A DNA stretch of 64,000 bases from Amoeboaphelidium protococcarum X5 (lineage: Eukaryota; Fungi; Aphelidiomycota): positions 868,001-932,000 of the forward strand of contig JALDTO010000146.1 in assembly GCA_023515725.1 (NCBI GenBank), given 5' to 3'. A program made the translations under genes and the position numbers. Shown piece after piece: positions 42,353-52,902 of the stretch. Below the pieces are notes generated by a model. That model was given only the letters and a program-made list of their open reading frames with translations. It did not search any database and was not told the origin of the DNA. Each line of letters starts with the position of its first letter. Within the stretch, counting starts at the first letter, position 1.

Positions 42353-43936
42353 TCATTCAAAAGTCACCTTGAAGCGAGACTTTTTGCCGTTGCAGTTAAT
42401 AGGCACACGCTTCATCGTCTCAGTATCATCGTCGTTCTCAAATTCGCCTGATGGTGGGTACGGCTGATCTTCAGTTGAAGCAGCATCAAGCTCTGTGGAC
42501 TCGCTAACATTAAAGCGACCTTTCTTGACGGTACTAGATAATTTGCCAGCTTGTTGATTTAAATTCTGATTTTCTTTGTCTGCTGACAAAGATCCGGCAG
42601 ATTACTACTCTTCCAGTCCGACCTTCTCCATCATTCGGTTGAGAGCATCAGCCTCCACTGTTGAAAAGTCCCAACTGACACCACGACCGCTTGACTTCTG
42701 AGACTCATTAGGCTTCTTAACATTACGCTCAAGAAGAGGTTTAACGTGGTCAAGTAGAGTCTTCACCAGATAATCTTTCCGCTTGGCCTATTTGAAAAAA
42801 GCATGCTCAAGCAGTTTCTTGGCGGAGAGTCTTTTACGAGGATCTTTCACCAGGCACGCGTCAATCATTTACTGGAACAATTTAGAGTACTTGTGATTAG
42901 CCCCGTCTCTATCCAGACGTGGAGGGTCATGATTCAGAGTGAGCATCAACACTTTCAGCGGAGGATAGTGCGAGTAAGGTGCGCGACCATACGCCAACTC
43001 CAAGGCTGTTATACCAAAAGACCAAATATCAGCCTTACAGTCATAACCACTCTTTGACTACCCGGTGCTCAATACTTCTGGAGCAATGAAGCACGGTGTC
43101 CCGACAAAAGTCTTGCGCTGACTTCCTCTCTCGCCATACTCTGCCAAAGAGCTACTCACACCAAAGTCGGCGAGGTAGACGCTACCATCAGAGTCAATCA
43201 ACAGATTACCAGACTTGACATCACGATGGATATGATTGTTTCGATGCAGATAATCCAGTCCCTGAAGTGCCTACTTGAGTATTGTCGCGATAGATACTTC
43301 ATCAAGGCCATCTTGAAAACCGTTACGCAGAATATCCAAACACGAACCAACCTCAATGAACGGAGCAACAATGTACAGGAAATGATCTTTGACAAATGAA
43401 GCATAGACTGGCAATAGATTAGCATGCCGACACAGAGTCATAATTTGCAGTTCACGACGCAGTTCATCAATCTGATTACGCTCAAACATGTCCAGATCAA
43501 TCATCTTGATCGCGACTTACGCGTCCGTAGGCTTGAACTTTGCAATATAAACAGTGGCAGAAGAGCCATAACCCACAACACTACCAAGTTCATAATCCTG
43601 AGGATTCATAGACACCAAAAGATTGTGCTGATTCTCCTAACAAAGAGATTCCTGGTCATCTTTATTCAAACCGCCAGTGATATTAGCCAGTATTCCTTAA
43701 CCAGATTGGTACTACAGAGAGGTCTTTCGCGCCAGAGACTGAAATTTCTGGGACAATGACTCTTTGCGCCTGTGATTATTAGCCAACTGATTATTACTAA
43801 TCAGAGATATACCACTGCTCAGACTGCGGTTATGTCCTCTCTTTGCAGCCGGTGACGACTAACCTTCCTGATGATTACTATCACGGCTGGTGGACCTTTA
43901 CGGGGACGTTGATGAATTTGATGATGATGATGACAT
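42353..43936 (-). CDS. STE20-family kinase, OSR1/SPAK/Fray-like
   Basis: [49 protein letters not shown] motif; TGA 42353-42355. Confidence 0.88.
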
Positions 43937-44546
43937 GATGATTCTACTTCACGCTCGCAGGTAAGTAAATAGAAATTACAATTCAAATCAACAACAGATG
44001 AATTGTAAATAAATAAAAACAACTTAAAGAGAAAAAGAAGAGCTAATGAGGCTGAGATTATTGTTATATATTCGTCGATTGAATAGTCAATCAATGAACA
44101 CAACCAATTTAGGCGATCTGGCCAATCACATGAAAAGCTGTGCTGTTACAGTCCGTTTCAGCACAATGTCCGATCCACTGAAAAAATTGTGAACCGTTTC
44201 AAAAAACGACGGAGTTTTATGAACTTTCCTATTATAGTTAAAATTCGGACTCGAAATGCCAAAATATACGCGTAATTTAGGCAACTCTTGATGACTTAAG
44301 TGACATCGATAATGCCGTAAAAGTTCTTTATTACATACTCTTCCAAGTCAAGCATTAAGTTCATTGCCATCAATAAACTATTGTAGTAGTCAAGTGATGG
44401 ATAGTAGTGGCGTGAATCTTTTTCTAGTTGCTAATGTAGCTCTTTGAATCTTGGTTATTTTCCATAAAGTGCCAAGAAAAAAATTCAATTTCCACGTTAC
44501 TAAATGTGGCTTGCTTTTTTGAATCCAATTATTACTTACTTATGCC

Positions 44547-44553
44547 TATAAAA
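44547..44553 (+). promoter_or_regulatory. Putative TATA box of the Fanzor-like ORF
   Basis: TATAAAA starting 70 nt upstream of ATG 44617, followed by a pyrimidine tract. Confidence 0.5.
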
Positions 44554-44616
44554 GCGCCAGACAGTACACATTTCCTTCTTCTTCTTCTTTCTTATCTAAC
44601 TTACCATAAATATAAA

Positions 44617-45942
44617 ATGGCAAATAAAGTTACACGTAAATGCAAACTGAACACCGCCTTGAATCTTGACGATGGTGATAAGGAGATATTGATATCACAG
44701 ATTCGACTGAGCTCTGTGCATCTCACCTTTGCATCGCGTCTGATTTACCTCAGTCTTTATGTTTGGAATGAAGCTGGCAAGGCACTACCTGAACTATCTC
44801 ATCAGTAGTATTTTGTGTCAATGCTGGAGTATCTCTGCAACTCTGCTTTCCATCGCGACAATGATCACACGCGAATGCTGGCTGAAGCAATTGCTCCTGA
44901 AGTGCGATAGAGATTGAGACACGAGAGCCTGATTGGTCCAAATCCAAATTTATATCTGTTTCAAGCGCGTAAGATCATTCAGGTCATCTCCTGGCATCTT
45001 ACAGAGACCTTATGGGTGTATTAGAAGAAGGTGATTAAAGCTTAAATGGAGGCCTTTAATGTAAAAGGCCGAAGGCTTACCGTGTTTCTATAGCTGCTCA
45101 ACTCTCTGCTGACTGAAGAAGCTGTTAACACGATGGAACACTTTGGGGGCGAGTACTTGGAGATTAATCCCGCAACATAGATCCATTAGCCTCCTGATTA
45201 CGATGCTGGTGAAGATGATGAGACAATTGCGCAATAAGATGCTGCTAACAAGGACGAGTCGCTGCAATTGTTATAGGTTGAAGAAGTTCGGCACTTAGTC
45301 TCCATACATCGTCACCATTTATTGGATATTGTCACCACTTCCTTTTAAGACAAAGCTCCGAGAAAACGCTATAGTAAAAGAAAATAGGAGTCCTCGCGTC
45401 AGCTGAAAGGATCTATCGGTTTCAATAGATAGAAATCTGGTAAGCTGAAGGAGCGTGATTTCCACCACAACTACATTCCATCAAGAGCACACCATGCATT
45501 TTAGAATCAGGCTGGCTAAAAAGGTTTAGTACAGTATCTCATATATTTGCGTCAAACCCTTAAGGAACTGGGCTTGTCATCATTCAAGATTTTCCCTACT
45601 GGTACCGATGTTCCGCGCCACATCAGCTTTGACAATAGAGTTTTGGCTCAGTGGGGGTTTGGGCAATATCGTCTGGGCAATCAGCCGGCGGAGTAGGAGG
45701 AGCATGTGTAGACGCAAGAGGAAGAGAAGCAATGTATCTTGAAGTTGAAAATGGGTCTTTTGCGGCGGATGGCGAATTTCTAAGACGTCAGTATCAGCTC
45801 TGATGGTTTTGCGTGCTCTGTTTCAGTTTCAGATCAAGGTGGGAAAGCGTATGCCAACGAAGCTAAAGATCTGGAAAGTGTTGATCGTGTGATCAAACAA
45901 CGTACGTCTCAAGCCACAGTAGCAATGGCGCTGTGCCACTGA
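44617..45942 (+). CDS. Fanzor1-like protein (WED/REC portion) lacking the RuvC nuclease, 441 aa
   Basis: Open in code 6 with 17 TAR codons by my count. N-terminal KVTRKCKLNTAL; YLIYLRQTLKELG-FKIFPTGTDVPRHISFD and SISSDGFACSV recall the Fanzor FxLxP..PxHIxID and SIxTDGxSxS motifs. No DPG/E/CxxC/RD-N motifs before the TGA. Confidence 0.65.
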
Positions 45943-46005
45943 GGCTTACGTTGGAGTGCGAACTGTCGTCCACTCTCTTTTATATACTGTGAATCACTGT
46001 ATAAT
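45905..46005 (+). ncRNA. Candidate omegaRNA-like structured RNA overlapping the ORF 3' end
   Basis: Stems AAGCC(45911-15)/GGCTT(45943-47), GAGTG(45954-58)/CACTC(45971-75), CACAGTA(45915-21)/TACTGTG(45985-91); position matches Fanzor omegaRNA loci. Confidence 0.35.
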
Positions 46006-47411
46006 ATACAATCGTCTTCATTAATATATTCATTGTTTTAATAGTTAGTAACTACAAAACGCCTTAGAGCGAACAAAGGCTGCTTAATGGTTACTCGCGT
46101 CCTTTCTGAGCTGGTGATTGGATAGGTGCAGAGCTACGATAGCGAGTCGCGGTCTTACGGTACACAAGATGAGATGAAAAGATTGCTCGCAGGTTACTCC
46201 GGCGTGACTGGTTAAGACTCCTCTTGAAAATACATCTGCTGTTGCTGAAATGATCATATTCCTAGATCCGGAATCATTGACTTTGGATAGTGTGATTTGC
46301 ACACTTTTACTGTGTCTATATATGTTTGATTGGCTTTACGGCGTCAATTTGGTATGATATTCATCCAGCAGCCTTGTCAGATCTTTATGAAAATATGAAC
46401 AGGTGTATCTCGAGTTACGCTAGGGGCCAGTCGTTGTTTCGTTACATGCGAAGGCAGTGACTTGCTAACGATGCCTTGTCGATCGCGAACGGAATTGGAG
46501 CGAATAGTCACCGCATAAGTTGCTAGTAATGATTAATCTGTTGTCGTATATAGTGATTCAAAGCTTTTAAAATGAAAGTTTTTAATCGGTGTGTAAGTAA
46601 TCAGCAGAGAGCGTCCAAGTCTCTAACTGTTGTCAAGTGAAAGTTGATTGACGCGACTGGTTTTTCAAATGATTAAGCAGCTTTAGCAGCACTCTATCTA
46701 GATTGACGGCGCCAAAGTTATATGGACTGTGAACTATGTACGCTCTTAGCTCCAGATTGAAAGTATAGGCATTGTATTTCGAGAATTGGGATCGCGCGGC
46801 GATTAGGACCAACCCGTACTATTGTTGATTCAAGCGACGCGGCTTGATAACGAACGCATCCTCATCAGACTATTCTGCACAGTTGTAAAGTTGTTAAAGA
46901 CATAATTTTTTAAAGCAGAGAACATATGACTACGAGGACGATATGTCCGTAAGCTGATCAACTCGCGCTCAAGTTGCGGACCACTTGTCGTTACTCCATT
47001 CAACCTCGCCAACTACAGAGGATAGAGGGAATGCCTGGGAACAAGTACTGTAAATGAGTAACCACACAAGAGCAACTTTGAGTGGATGCAGAAATGAAAT
47101 CTATTCACCGTTGAACAACATTTTGAAATAGTAATTGCGTATTTGTACAGCATGAGATTTCCAATTCATGTTACAGTCGTGCAGACTGATCAATGATCTT
47201 TGCCTATTGTGGCTGAGCAACGTTCCCACGCCTCCTCAAGATTATACAATCAAGTTCTCACGATAGATGAGATCCATCTCTTTTGATCATCGTGTTAATA
47301 TAGTATTCAACTTATTTACACGTTTTTACCTTGCTTGTCTGGTTAGATCCTGTATAGTCAGTCTAAGTTTCCCCTGTCTAGTATATCAAGTAGTCCCGAT
47401 ATAGCATTCAT

Positions 47412-47709
47412 TGTTAGCACACGCGTCGATCAAGTATCAACAACTGACTCTGTGGGGCTTAGATGATCAACATTGTTTCAAGTGCGCGCCTCTCTCATCA
47501 TTGACGTCTCGAATAGGCAAGTATCTGCAGTATATTTGCGCGCCACTTATGAACATTGATTTCTTCCACTTAACGTGTTAATAGAGTATTTATCTTATTA
47601 ACATATTTTATCTTCCTGTACTTCTGTTGGTGTCTCTGTTTGACTCTTAATCTTTGTATATAGCTTCCCGTCTTTTCCTATTGTGTTTATAGTCTGTCCT
47701 AGAGTATCA
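47412..47709 (+). repeat. 5' LTR
   Basis: TGTTAGCAC...AGAGTATCA; no difference found from the 3' LTR by eye. Confidence 0.95.
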
Positions 47710-47710
47710 C

Positions 47711-47720
47711 TTAACACGTT
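47711..47720 (+). other. Self-priming primer-binding site
   Basis: TTAACACGTT is the exact reverse complement of LTR-internal AACGTGTTAA (47572-47581); no TGG tRNA-type PBS. Confidence 0.75.
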
Positions 47721-47733
47721 CTCTGTAATAGTA

Positions 47734-48684
47734 ATGTCTGGCACTAACACTCCTCCCGTTGATATCAATTAACTGATGGCCATTAATCAGCAGCTCTAGA
47801 ATTAAATATAATTCCTCTCTGACTAAATGACTTTATTACAACATCACGCTGCGCACTCAACTTCATCAGCGCCGCCTCCGCCATCTGCATTATAGAAGCG
47901 TTAAATTGTCTATCCTGAGAAATTCGATGGTAATGTAACTGAGTTCCGCTCATTCGTCAATTAATGCTAATTGATGTTTGACTTACATCCTGAAGCGTTT
48001 GCATCTGATGACATCAAAATCAAGACTGTTGGCTCTTTGCTCTGCAAGAAGGCAAGCAAGTACTATGATCCGATTATCGAATAGCCGGACCAGTACAAGG
48101 ATGAGCTGAAATCTTATGATTCATTCATTTAGTGCCTTAAGGATTGGTTATGCCCCGCTAACTAGCGTGATAATGATGAGAAAGCACTACGTAAGCTGAA
48201 ACAAGGCACTTCCTCTGTCTCCGCCTATGCGGCTGAATTTAGATATCTCTCTTCTGGAATAGGTTGGAATGATACTTCCTTAAAGTCTGAATTTAGAGAA
48301 GGATTGAACAATGATGTCAGACTGCTTATGTTATCTACGGATGAGCCGGAGTCTTTGTCTGAGTTGGTAAAATTAGCCATCCGTTGTGGCGAACGCGTTG
48401 CTGATATGAAGGCCTTAGGTGGTGGTTATCGTCACTTCAGAAAGTAGCATTCATCCAGTGGATCTTCTACTGCTTCTGCTTATTCTAACTCTTCTACTTC
48501 TGCTTCTCATTCTTCTTCTGGCCCTTCTCATCCAGACAATATGGAAATTGATCAAGTAAAGCGTGGTCCTCTGTCTGCAGAAGAACGCCAGCGTAGACTG
48601 ACTGAGAGATTATGTTTATACTGCGGTGGTGCTGGACATATTAAATCTGACTGCTCTGTGTTGAAGAATCGTACTCAAGGGTGA
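47734..48684 (+). CDS. gag: Retrotransposon Gag
   Basis: PEKFDG...FVNQCQL, LKQGTSSVSAYAAEF, FREGLN, MEID, zinc knuckle CLYCGGAGHIKSDC; TGA 48682-48684. Confidence 0.92.
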
Positions 48685-51600
48685 CTCTCGAATGAATATA
48701 TTTTTAGTCTAACTTCAGCTACTTCATCAAAGATGATTCTTCCTACTTTATTAAAGTATGGCCCGCAGAATATCCACCTTCCTTTCCTCTTAGATTCTGG
48801 TGCTGACAGCTGCTTCCTTAATGAAAGTGTCGTTTCTGAATTTAATATTCCCGTCGTCAGATGTAAGAGTAAAGTCCGAGTATCTTTCGCTGATGGAGAC
48901 AGGCAGAATAACGTGTACATAACGCATCAGACTGTACCCTTGTAAATGCATATTGGTACTCATATTGAAACCATTACGTTCTATGTGATTAAACTTGCTC
49001 ATAGTGGAATTATTGGGTACTCATGGTTGAAACTGCATAATCCAGAGATTGATTGGTCTGCTGAAACTATTAAATTTGCATCGCCGCATTGTTTGACTAG
49101 TTGCGTTAACTCTCCGGAATCGATTTCAACTTCCGTGGCCTCAGAAACCGCTTGTTCAGTAGTATCTTCCGAAAGTTAGCCTGTATACGTGTCTCTCCCA
49201 GATTCTCGCAATTCTCTTAGTCCTGAGTCAGTCCCTGCTGCAATGTCTGCATTCCATTCCGTCCCTTAACTTCCCTCTGCTGAGAATAATCCAGTTTCTG
49301 AATCCTTTGCTGTTGCTGTGCCTTAACCTGTCGGTGAGGATGCCATTATTGATGTTGTCTCTGATATTAATTAGTTTGACTCTTGTGTCTCTGTTTCCGT
49401 TTCTGATTCTTCGTCTATGTCCACTCCATTAAATGTTAGGAGTGATTCTACTTCTGTCACTACTTCCGTCTCTTGTCTCGATTCTGCGTCTGTCATTACT
49501 TCTGTCTCTAGTCTAGATTCAACTTCTGTCTCTGAATCTGTCTCTGGTCCCTCTTGTCTCAGCATTAATGCAGCAATTCTTGGTATGTATGAGAAGGATT
49601 CTGATAACACTATTATTCCTGGTTTCATTTATGAGGCTGAAGATGGTTCAATTAATTATCGATGCTTATCTGATGTTATCCAAGAGTAAGTTTGTTTAAT
49701 GAAAGAGGATGCCGATGCATCTAATCCAACTCTCCCTAATTAGATTAAGGATTTTGGTGATGTATTCATGAAGTAGCAGTTAAATGAGCTTCCACCTCAT
49801 CGTGAACAAGACTGCACTATTGACTTGGAGCCTGGTAGCAAGCCTCCTGTTGGTAAAATGTATAAATTGACTTAGGAAGAAGATTCTGTCATGCGTGAAT
49901 GGTTATCAAAGAATCTGGATCGTGGCTTCATACGCAAGAGCTAGTCACCTTATGGTGCTCCCTGTTTCTTTGTTCGCAAGGCTGACTGGACTAATGATTC
50001 TAAGTTACGACTCTGCATGGATTACCGTGGATTGAACAAGATTACCATTAAGAATCGGAATCCTCTGCCAAACATATCTGACATTTTCCGCTCTCTTTAG
50101 AAAGGAAAGTTGTTTACTGCATTGGATTTAGATGGTGCATTTGAGCTTCTGCGTGTCAAAGCTGGCCATGAAGCTAAAACCGCTTTTCTCACTAAATATG
50201 GTCAATACGAATTTCTGGTGATGCCTTTTGGTTTGGCAAACGCTCCCGCTTAATTTCAAACATTCATGAATGATCTATTTAAGAACTAGATTGGCAAATT
50301 TGTTGTGGTTTATCTGGATGATATTGTTGTATATACTGATGGTGATGAAAAGGAACATTGGTAACATGTACGCGAAGTTTTGTAGATTCTCCGTTCTAAT
50401 AAGCTTTACTGTAAACTGTCAAAGTGCAAGTTCGCTTAATCTTCTACGTCTTTCCTCGGCTATATTCTGTCCAAAGATGGTATTCTCATGGATCCTAGAA
50501 AAGTCGAAGCTGTTACTCAATGGCCAACGCCAAAGAATGTAAAGGATGTGATGATGTTCCACGGCTTTGTGAATTTCTACCGTAAATTCATTCCGCACTT
50601 TGCAGATCTGACGCGCCCTCTGACTTAACTACTCAAAAAGGATGTTGTTTTTACTTGGGATGCCGAGAGGTAGCACGCATTTGACTCGCTGAAAAAGATG
50701 TTTAATAGTAATATTGTACTAAGTCATCCTGATGAAGAGAAACCTTTCGTGGTTGAAGCAGATGCGTCTGACTATGGCATTGCCGGTGTATTGTCTTAGT
50801 AGTCTGACTCTGGAGAATTCAAACCTGTCGCTTTCTATTCAAGATAACTCAATCCTGCTGAGCGTAATTATGAGATCTATGATAAGGAATTACTGGCAAT
50901 TCATCAATGCTTCAAAGAATGGCGCCACTTTCTGCAAGGTGGTAAGCATCAAGTTACAGTCTTGACTGATCATAAGAGTTTGCAATATTTCACGACCACA
51001 AAGCAATTGACAAGGAGATAGGCTAGATGGTCTCTATTCTTCTCTGAGTTTGATTTTGTCTTGACACATCGTCCTGGTGCCAGAAATGGTAAAGCTGATC
51101 TGCTCTCTAGACGCTCAGATTATGCGGTTGACGAAGAGAAGTACAATTTTAGATGTTTGTTAGATCCTTCGAAGTTTGTGACTCCGTAAGAGTTGGATCT
51201 GTTTTCCATGTCCGTTGGTCAAGAGCTGTAGTGTTAGATGATCAGAAGTGATGTACTCAATAAGGAATTTGATGAAGAGCGTGACTGGCCTATGGTAATT
51301 GCGCATTTCCTGTTGACGGACGAATGGTTGGATGTATCTAGTGACATATTGGATAAATGTAAGTAAGAGTGTCAACATTTCATCATGGTGCATGGAAAGT
51401 TACACAGAATCCTGGCTGATAATCGATCGAAGAGACCTTACTTGCTAAAGTCTGATAGAGATGCTCATATAGCTCGATTCCATGATGGACTTGGTCATTT
51501 TAAGTATCATTCCATAGTTGACCTCATTGAACGCCGTTTCTGGTGGCCTGATATGCATGCCGACATTAAGTAGTATATTAAAGAGTGTGCGCAATGCTAA

Positions 51601-52659
51601 CTTGATGCTTCTAAGAATTAGTTCACGCAAAAGACTCTTCTGCGTCCTATTCCTCCCGTTGCTCTCCCATTCGAGAGATGGGGTATCGACTTTGTGCAGG
51701 ATCTGTAAACGACTAAATCTGGTAATAATCACATCATTACCGCTATTGATTACGCTACTCGTTGGGTGGTTGCTAAAGCTGTGAAGTTTAGAGATTCTGA
51801 TACTGTTGCAGATTTCCTCTACAATGATATCTTTATGAATTACGGTGCACCTTATGAGATTTTGTCTGATAGAGCAAAGTCATTCTTAGCTGATGGTATA
51901 GCGAAATATGAAAGAATGCAAGGTGTTAGACCAATTGCTACTGCACCTTATCACCCTCAAACTAATGGTATGGTAGAGAGAATGCATTCTATGCTCAATC
52001 ACGCGATAACTACTTTAACTAATGGGCGTCCGGAAAGATGGGACGAGTATCTGAAGTAAGCTTTGTTTGGTATACGCTGCCGAACTCATGCAGTGACCAA
52101 GAAGTCACCATTCTACATGCTTTATGGTGTGGAGCCTCGTTTACTAGGTGATTCGCGTCCTCCTGAGTGCACTTTGCAGCCGTTGGATGAGATTGAGTAG
52201 CTTGAGGAGAAAGGAGAAATTATGGCAAGAACCTTTGAAGCTATGGGAGATTCCAGAGCTGCTGCGTATGAGAGATCTAAGACTTAGGCTGAAAGTATGA
52301 GAAGACGTCACAATCTTGATCCGAATGCTCCAGAATATTACTTCAAGATTGGTGATTGGGTCAAGTTAAAGCATCACAGCATGAATAAGTTTGAATTCGA
52401 TTGGAAGGGACCATATCATGTTGTCGACGTTGGATTTCCCGGTACCTACTGGTTGATGTCACCTGATGGAATACGATTTGATGCTACAGTTAATGAAAGA
52501 GATCTTGCTCCTTTTCTGGCAGCTACTGAGAAGAATAAGGACTATTTCTATGATGGATCTTCAAGGAGTTCTGTGGATTAGCTGCCGTTTAGAGAGGGGG
52601 CTAGTGTTAGCACACGCGTCGATCAAGTATCAACAACTGACTCTGTGGGGCTTAGATGA
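48685..52659 (+). CDS. pol: Retrotransposon Pol (PR-RT-RNaseH-IN), same frame as gag
   Basis: [67 protein letters not shown]; no TGA until 52657-52659. Confidence 0.95.
52591..52600 (+). other. Polypurine tract
   Basis: AGAGAGGGGG 4 nt before the 3' LTR. Confidence 0.85.
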
Positions 52660-52902
52660 TCAACATTGTTTCAAGTGCGCGCCTCTCTCATCATTGACGT
52701 CTCGAATAGGCAAGTATCTGCAGTATATTTGCGCGCCACTTATGAACATTGATTTCTTCCACTTAACGTGTTAATAGAGTATTTATCTTATTAACATATT
52801 TTATCTTCCTGTACTTCTGTTGGTGTCTCTGTTTGACTCTTAATCTTTGTATATAGCTTCCCGTCTTTTCCTATTGTGTTTATAGTCTGTCCTAGAGTAT
52901 CA
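52605..52902 (+). repeat. 3' LTR
   Basis: Direct repeat of 47412-47709. Confidence 0.95.

Follow-up and report, generated by a model that had tools for sequence, protein, structure and literature searches.

The open reading frame at positions 44617–45942 of the plus strand of the window (the whole 64-kb stretch of Amoeboaphelidium protococcarum DNA analyzed here) is most likely a truncated, non-functional relic of a Fanzor1-type transposon. Its homology, its break point, the domains it lacks and the copy numbers of its family are observed directly, and its function has probably been lost. The frame corresponds to the first 55% of a Fanzor1-type gene, whose carrier is a 2.8-kb non-autonomous transposon of the Tc1/mariner-like type. 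The window copy lacks everything past codon 420, namely RuvC-I, II and III, the TNB domain with its zinc finger, the structured 3' end and the terminal repeat on the 3' side, and the remnant is joined to an unrelated 160-bp repeat, which by chance supplies 21 codons up to the first TGA. Only the WED/REC lobe and the family promoter are left. Such relics stay open for long and become annotated as genes because TGA alone terminates translation in this organism.

A. protococcarum is an aphelid that reads TAA and TAG as glutamine and retains TGA as its only stop codon. TGA-only frames of 900–1300 codons occur throughout the 64-kb window, which indicates that TAA and TAG here encode amino acids. 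The frame at 44617–45942 has 17 in-frame TAA/TAG codons and a single terminal TGA, and its translation under code 6 gave 441 uninterrupted codons, whereas the standard code reaches a stop after 63 amino acids; both lengths agree with the preliminary description. The motifs quoted there were all found and in the claimed order, KVTRKCKLNTAL being followed by YLIYLRQTLKELG...FKIFPTGTDVPRHISFD and then by SISSDGFACSV. The SDG lies 44 codons before the end of the frame, against the roughly 45 given earlier. The TATA box reported for the gene is also present: TATAAAA is located at 44547–44553 (plus strand), 70 nt 5' of the ATG, and is a putative promoter element. It is conserved at −70 in the paralogues (at −67 in the copy L002) and was found in all 11 copies that could be checked.

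The same 441-amino-acid protein is deposited at NCBI as P0053, and the gene is therefore not hidden from protein-based mining by its alternative code, contrary to what had been claimed. The NCBI names of its paralogues take the form 'hypothetical protein MIR68_... [Amoeboaphelidium protococcarum]', and the Fanzor1-type genes of this species, which belong to at least four lineages, are annotated as hypothetical proteins only. The wider claim that standard-code Fanzor mining would miss such genes is unsupported too, as their NCBI translations are correct and the supplement of Saito et al. 2023 already includes Fanzor hits from Amoeboaphelidium occidentale, the sister species (KAI3658238.1 and KAI3657820.1). 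No paper in the literature searched names Fanzor alongside Amoeboaphelidium or aphelids.

Searched at the DNA level, the 23.6-Mb assembly that contains the window yielded 22 matches to the frame. Twelve other copies in the full-length range match it from nucleotide 1 to ~1260 only, and their own frames continue to 771–772 amino acids, with the C-terminal end ...RPQWNCRAERRA. The window copy belongs to subfamily A, where L002 is intact, encodes 772 amino acids and is 93% identical over the frame at 44617–45942. A second member, L003, is 94% identical to the window frame, is broken off at nt 978 and is annotated as the 348-residue protein P0050; it lies on the same contig as the window copy and its break falls at a different point. 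Subfamily B contains eight intact copies, which are ~99–100% identical among themselves and ~85% identical to the window frame. Of the two alternatives in the preliminary description, these data favor the second, an internal-deletion derivative pointing to active code-6 Fanzors elsewhere in the genome: intact copies exist, eight of subfamily B and one of subfamily A, although the loss is more exactly a 3' truncation than an internal deletion.

The C-terminal half of the intact paralogues, which has no counterpart in the window copy, contains the sequences LIG[IV]DPGKKN, VVITPE[YF]HTSKQHS[IL]CH, a zinc finger of the form CP...C.NC, and VDRDVNAY. These hold the D-E-D triad of RuvC (IDPG, PE[YF]HTSKxHSxCH, CxNC, DRDVNA), with the glutamate placed directly before the zinc ligands. 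A glutamate immediately upstream of the zinc ligands sets Fanzors apart from canonical TnpB (PMC13565253).

Pfam scans gave no significant match for stop-free pieces of the window frame or for the 198-residue C-terminal piece of L002, and the intact paralogue P0001 also had no Pfam match, scoring below the threshold of the TNB family PF07282. A phmmer search of PDB sequences returned nothing for the 198-residue piece or for P0001, and a profile of eight homologues gave only weak RuvC-III matches (LaTranC, E 0.12; a 'Transposase' chain, 0.38). HMMER, run exhaustively with the C-terminal piece, found 31 relatives. The distant homologues P0016, P0017 (from the chytrid Amoeboradix gromovi) and P0023 pass the Pfam cut-off for PF07282, the Cas12f1-like TNB domain, and a precomputed PF07282 assignment exists for P0043, a 40%-identical paralogue in the same species.

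An AlphaFold (AF2) model of P0001 was built from an eight-sequence alignment. It is of modest quality, with a mean pLDDT of 57.7; the N-terminal 160 residues have pLDDT values of 70–93, and residues 10–160 and 300–350 are confident. The single-sequence AlphaFold model of the 198-residue C-terminal piece had a pLDDT of 37. A Foldseek search of the PDB with the P0001 model gave seven hits at E ≤ 0.001, all of them Fanzor structures (SpuFz, the best at 8.6e-12, PpFz and GtFz), and the first hit after the Fanzors came at E 0.046. VIA-align superposed the model on Fanzor1 chains with Z 11.1–14.6 across model residues 1–767. TnpB and Cas12f chains aligned with Z ~6 on model residues 1–410, the match placing residues 2–175 of ISDra2 TnpB, the WED plus REC part of that structure, on model residues 2–406. 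SpuFz1 and GtFz1 are representatives of Fanzor1 (PMC10432273).

The family is Fanzor1-like as judged from the predicted structure, because of the Foldseek and VIA-align matches of the P0001 model and the TNB-bearing relatives, and the residues of the window frame correspond to its WED/REC lobe. Codons 1–420 (44617–45876, plus strand) make up the Fanzor-homologous part, as delimited by the alignments and the structural matches. The identity proposed in the preliminary description, a Fanzor1-like protein with the WED/REC part only, is supported by these matches together with the motifs of the intact paralogues; the comparison of an AlphaFold model with SpuFz that it called for was run on intact P0001.

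The frame is part of a longer piece of transposon DNA. By BLASTN to L002 and L003, the 1.73 kb at 44147–45878 (plus strand) is recognized as the 5' part of a Tc1/mariner-like element of subfamily A that carries a Fanzor gene. Its 5' terminus, TACAGTCCGTTTCAG at 44147, is intact, and it also includes the promoter region and nucleotides 1–1262 of the gene. In BLASTN it is 90.5% identical to L002 (44145–45878), also matches L003, and is ~84% identical to subfamily B. The intact elements are 2824 bp (A) or 2849 bp (B, with one B copy of 2837 bp) and contain a gene of 2.3 kb. They begin with TACAGT[CT]CGTTTCAG and finish with GAAATAGACTGTA. The element ends, TA/CAGT...ACTG/TA, form an imperfect terminal inverted repeat of ~13 bp and are of the Tc1/mariner-like type; they were seen in nine copies of this genome (2824–2849 bp) and in four of strain MP228.

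The Fanzor gene is the only gene of the intact elements, which have no transposase gene. The termini suggest that the Fanzor elements were mobilized in trans by a transposase of the DDE_3 type. A decayed DDE_3 (Tc1/mariner) element at G000:C98:191912–192611 (L042:413–1112) retains a transposase fragment and has the same ~30-nt terminal sequence as the Fanzor elements; an autonomous partner that mobilized them may have left this remnant. Further DDE_3 elements with TACAGT ends are present in the genome.

The 5' flanks were compared at the termini of the elements L004–L012, L002 and L046–L049. The base before the TA target is T in all 16 termini, which represent 15 independent insertions in two strains, and the base preceding that T is A in 14 of the 16 and G in the other two; the 3' flank is variable. 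Fanzor1 TAMs are AT-rich, 4–5 nt long and include the 5' target-site duplication (PMC13565253). The asymmetric ATTA 5' flank is a candidate insertion/TAM motif and would fit those of Fanzor1.

In the intact copies, GC-rich hairpins are predicted for the last codons together with the 53-nt 3' UTR (z −2.0), the region in which Fanzor guide (omega) RNAs arise. Rfam found nothing at window positions 43900–47500. The intact copies may well encode functional RNA-guided nucleases of an element that was mobile until recently.

Other Fanzor sequences are abundant in the genome, with 58 protein-level matches in at least four lineages, many of which are fragments. Two more lineages are intact with two copies each, one P0043-like (759 amino acids) and the other of ~800 amino acids and 47% identical to P0043; the copies are located at G000:C207:293405–295681, C249:16–2292, C98:1401584–1403974 and C142:302933–305320. 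The full-length A-type copies L002 (G000:C205) and L046 (JALECJ010000257.1 of strain MP228) have both flanks in common. L046 is the orthologue of L002, and the shared flanks place this insertion before the split of the two sequenced strains, in both of which it is intact.

The similarity of the window copy to every paralogue stops at 45878, which corresponds to nucleotide 1262 and codon 420 of the frame and lies ~37 residues before the RuvC-I aspartate (D457 of P0001). L002 and the second-strain contigs carry on with full-length sequence at this point. The window frame thus contains neither the RuvC nor the TNB domain. A code-6 tblastn search with the missing C-terminal 357 residues found no RuvC-coding sequence in the whole 64-kb window, and no 3' terminus of the element was found anywhere in it, which argues that no spliced or displaced RuvC exon is present here. 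The description of the locus as RuvC-less was therefore accurate, and the deletion junction is now mapped to 45878, at the edge of an unrelated repeat.

This repeat is a dispersed sequence of ~160 bp with a palindromic core (45879–46041, plus strand), and the last 21 codons and the TGA of the frame (45879–45942) are read from it. Copies with the same left boundary are found at L019 (1555–1729) and L020 (1601–1755), where they lie among unrelated genes, and another is at L032 (974–1074); roughly seven exist in all, in both orientations. When the repeat was compared with the four intact Fanzor families of the genome, it resembled none of their 3' ends. Two of the roughly seven copies adjoin Fanzor sequence, one at the window break and one ~30 nt 3' of a C-terminal remnant at C244:442.5k, an association that may only reflect transposon nests. 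The repeat was considered as the omega RNA or right end of the family and rejected, being unlike the 3' ends of the intact families and in opposite orientation at C244.

Further downstream, 46042–47169 is a 1.13-kb non-coding dispersed repeat, with four full-length copies at 97% as well as partial and more diverged ones (L014–L018). Neither a long frame nor obvious TG..CA ends are present, and the stretch belongs to a repeat family instead of being a unique 'accessory island'. It is followed by a gypsy-type LTR retrotransposon at 47412–52902 (plus strand) with long gag-pol frames. Its 298-nt LTRs (47412–47709 and 52605–52902) are 100% identical, which indicates a very recent insertion.

Changes in codons 1–326 were polarized with L002, L003 and L006. 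Private to the window copy are 25.5 nonsynonymous against 21.5 synonymous changes (omega ~0.35); the counts are 10:19 (omega ~0.16) for the intact L002 and 11:14 for L003. By these counts constraint on the window copy looks relaxed and not abolished. An omega of 0.35, being below 1, indicates that part of the branch evolved under constraint, and it is the value expected of a branch that lies partly before and partly after the truncation, two periods that are inseparable here. The window copy also has a private 3-nt deletion, and it carries N48Y in a column where ten homologues, with identities as low as 21%, all have Asn. When the 73 observed differences were placed at random on the inferred ancestor, the frame remained open in 49% of 20,000 trials. 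Openness by chance is this frequent because TGA alone stops translation, and the intact frame is therefore no evidence of selection. No 441-residue counterpart from strain MP228 was found in the 90% cluster, and none of the six annotated A-type copies of that strain (the P0051/P0047 pair, P0042, P0045, P0048, P0049 and P0055), one of which is L046, shares flanks with the window.

Some features of the locus speak against a relic: neither the promoter region nor the start codon is damaged, the frame carries a gene annotation, and the private omega is below 1. The same omega, the 441 open codons and the retained TATA box and start would favor a domesticated nuclease-free Fanzor, in which an expressed WED/REC protein serves as an RNA-guided or TAM-directed DNA binder, either a repressor or a competitor. 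In TnpB and Fanzor the WED/REC lobe reads the TAM and the guide-target duplex (PMC13565253), which is also in favor of such a role. However, the RuvC/TNB half is missing completely, as is the 3' end that encodes the RNA, while repressors of the TldR type keep the RuvC fold. The junction lies at an unrelated repeat in a nest of transposon debris and the last 21 residues come from that repeat, an invariant residue is replaced in N48Y, the open frame is expected by chance in about half of the trials, the 90% cluster holds no MP228 counterpart, and P0050 shows that another copy was broken off at a different point. The domesticated TldR-like binder put forward in the preliminary description is accordingly very unlikely. 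It is extremely doubtful that the 441-residue protein, made from the intact promoter, binds TAM sites or the omega RNAs of the intact copies and dampens the family as a nuclease-free competitor; if it did, it would be a eukaryotic, truncation-born counterpart of the nuclease-dead TnpB derivatives.

Another explanation would make the locus an internally deleted yet mobilizable non-autonomous 'ghost' element, with the 160-bp repeat as its 3' end and guide-RNA module. The intact 5' terminus, the strong palindromic core of the repeat and the repeat copy beside the Fanzor remnant at C244 are consistent with this. The repeat, however, has no ACTG/TA terminus, differs from the 3' end of each of the four intact Fanzor families, stands alone at L019 and L020, loci that contain no Fanzor sequence, and at C244 is oriented opposite to the remnant. 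A second copy of the composite of 5' part plus repeat was not found among the genome matches, and such an element is highly improbable. A mis-join of the assembly at the repeat boundary, with a full-length gene at the real locus, would likewise account for the break. No listed short-read contig of the source strain bridges 45878 and one ends exactly there, but this is expected either way, because any repeat boundary interrupts De Bruijn contigs. The window copy differs from its relatives by 73 private changes right up to the junction, and the genome matches included no orphan 3' half of subfamily A, which leaves an assembly artefact with minimal probability. A truncated relic remains the best explanation of the locus.

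The locus in the window would thus be an ordinary transposon relic, an example of how dead genes can go on looking alive under a code with a single stop. The Fanzor families of A. protococcarum are new, uncharacterized members of the known Fanzor1 group; the window locus is a damaged copy from one of these families. The lineages of this species, one of which has eight intact, near-identical copies with clean Tc1/mariner-like ends and an invariant ATTA 5' flank, are candidates for a Fanzor system that was active recently and whose TAM can be predicted. They would need recoding for expression.

Among known systems, the TldR proteins, which are TnpB-like nuclease-dead repressors, have a common superfamily origin with the window frame, and both are without nuclease activity, as predicted for the frame from its missing domains. 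TldRs retain the RuvC fold and a dedicated guide RNA; their loci are conserved, lie outside transposons and evolve under purifying selection. The window frame has neither an inactivated but retained RuvC fold nor a guide RNA, it lies in a nest of transposons, and constraint on it looks relaxed.

As regards TnpB of ISDra2 and Cas12f, the WED/REC lobe of the P0001 model superposes on TnpB residues 2–175 with Z ~6. The RuvC-III motif of the family, a CxxC followed by RDxNA, matches as well. Unlike TnpB and Cas12f, the proteins of this family are eukaryotic, have 771 residues as opposed to ~400 and possess a relocated RuvC-II glutamate. The transposon that carries their genes belongs to the Tc1/mariner type, as opposed to IS200/IS605.

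The closest similarity is to Fanzor1, represented by SpuFz1 of Spizellomyces punctatus (PDB codes 8GKH and 9CEU), GtFz1 and PpFz. The sequence identity of this family to them is just 10–15%, its genes are written in a code in which TAA and TAG specify glutamine, and the window copy is without the RuvC, TNB, omega-RNA region and right end. The predicted fold of the intact paralogues resembles Fanzor1 from end to end (Z 11–15). As in Fanzor1, their RuvC has the D-E-D motifs and its glutamate directly precedes the zinc finger, the REC is helical and enlarged, the genes reside in a DNA transposon with TA target sites, and their AT-rich 5' flank (ATTA) is in line with Fanzor1 TAMs. The open reading frame in the window is the counterpart of the WED/REC part of these enzymes.
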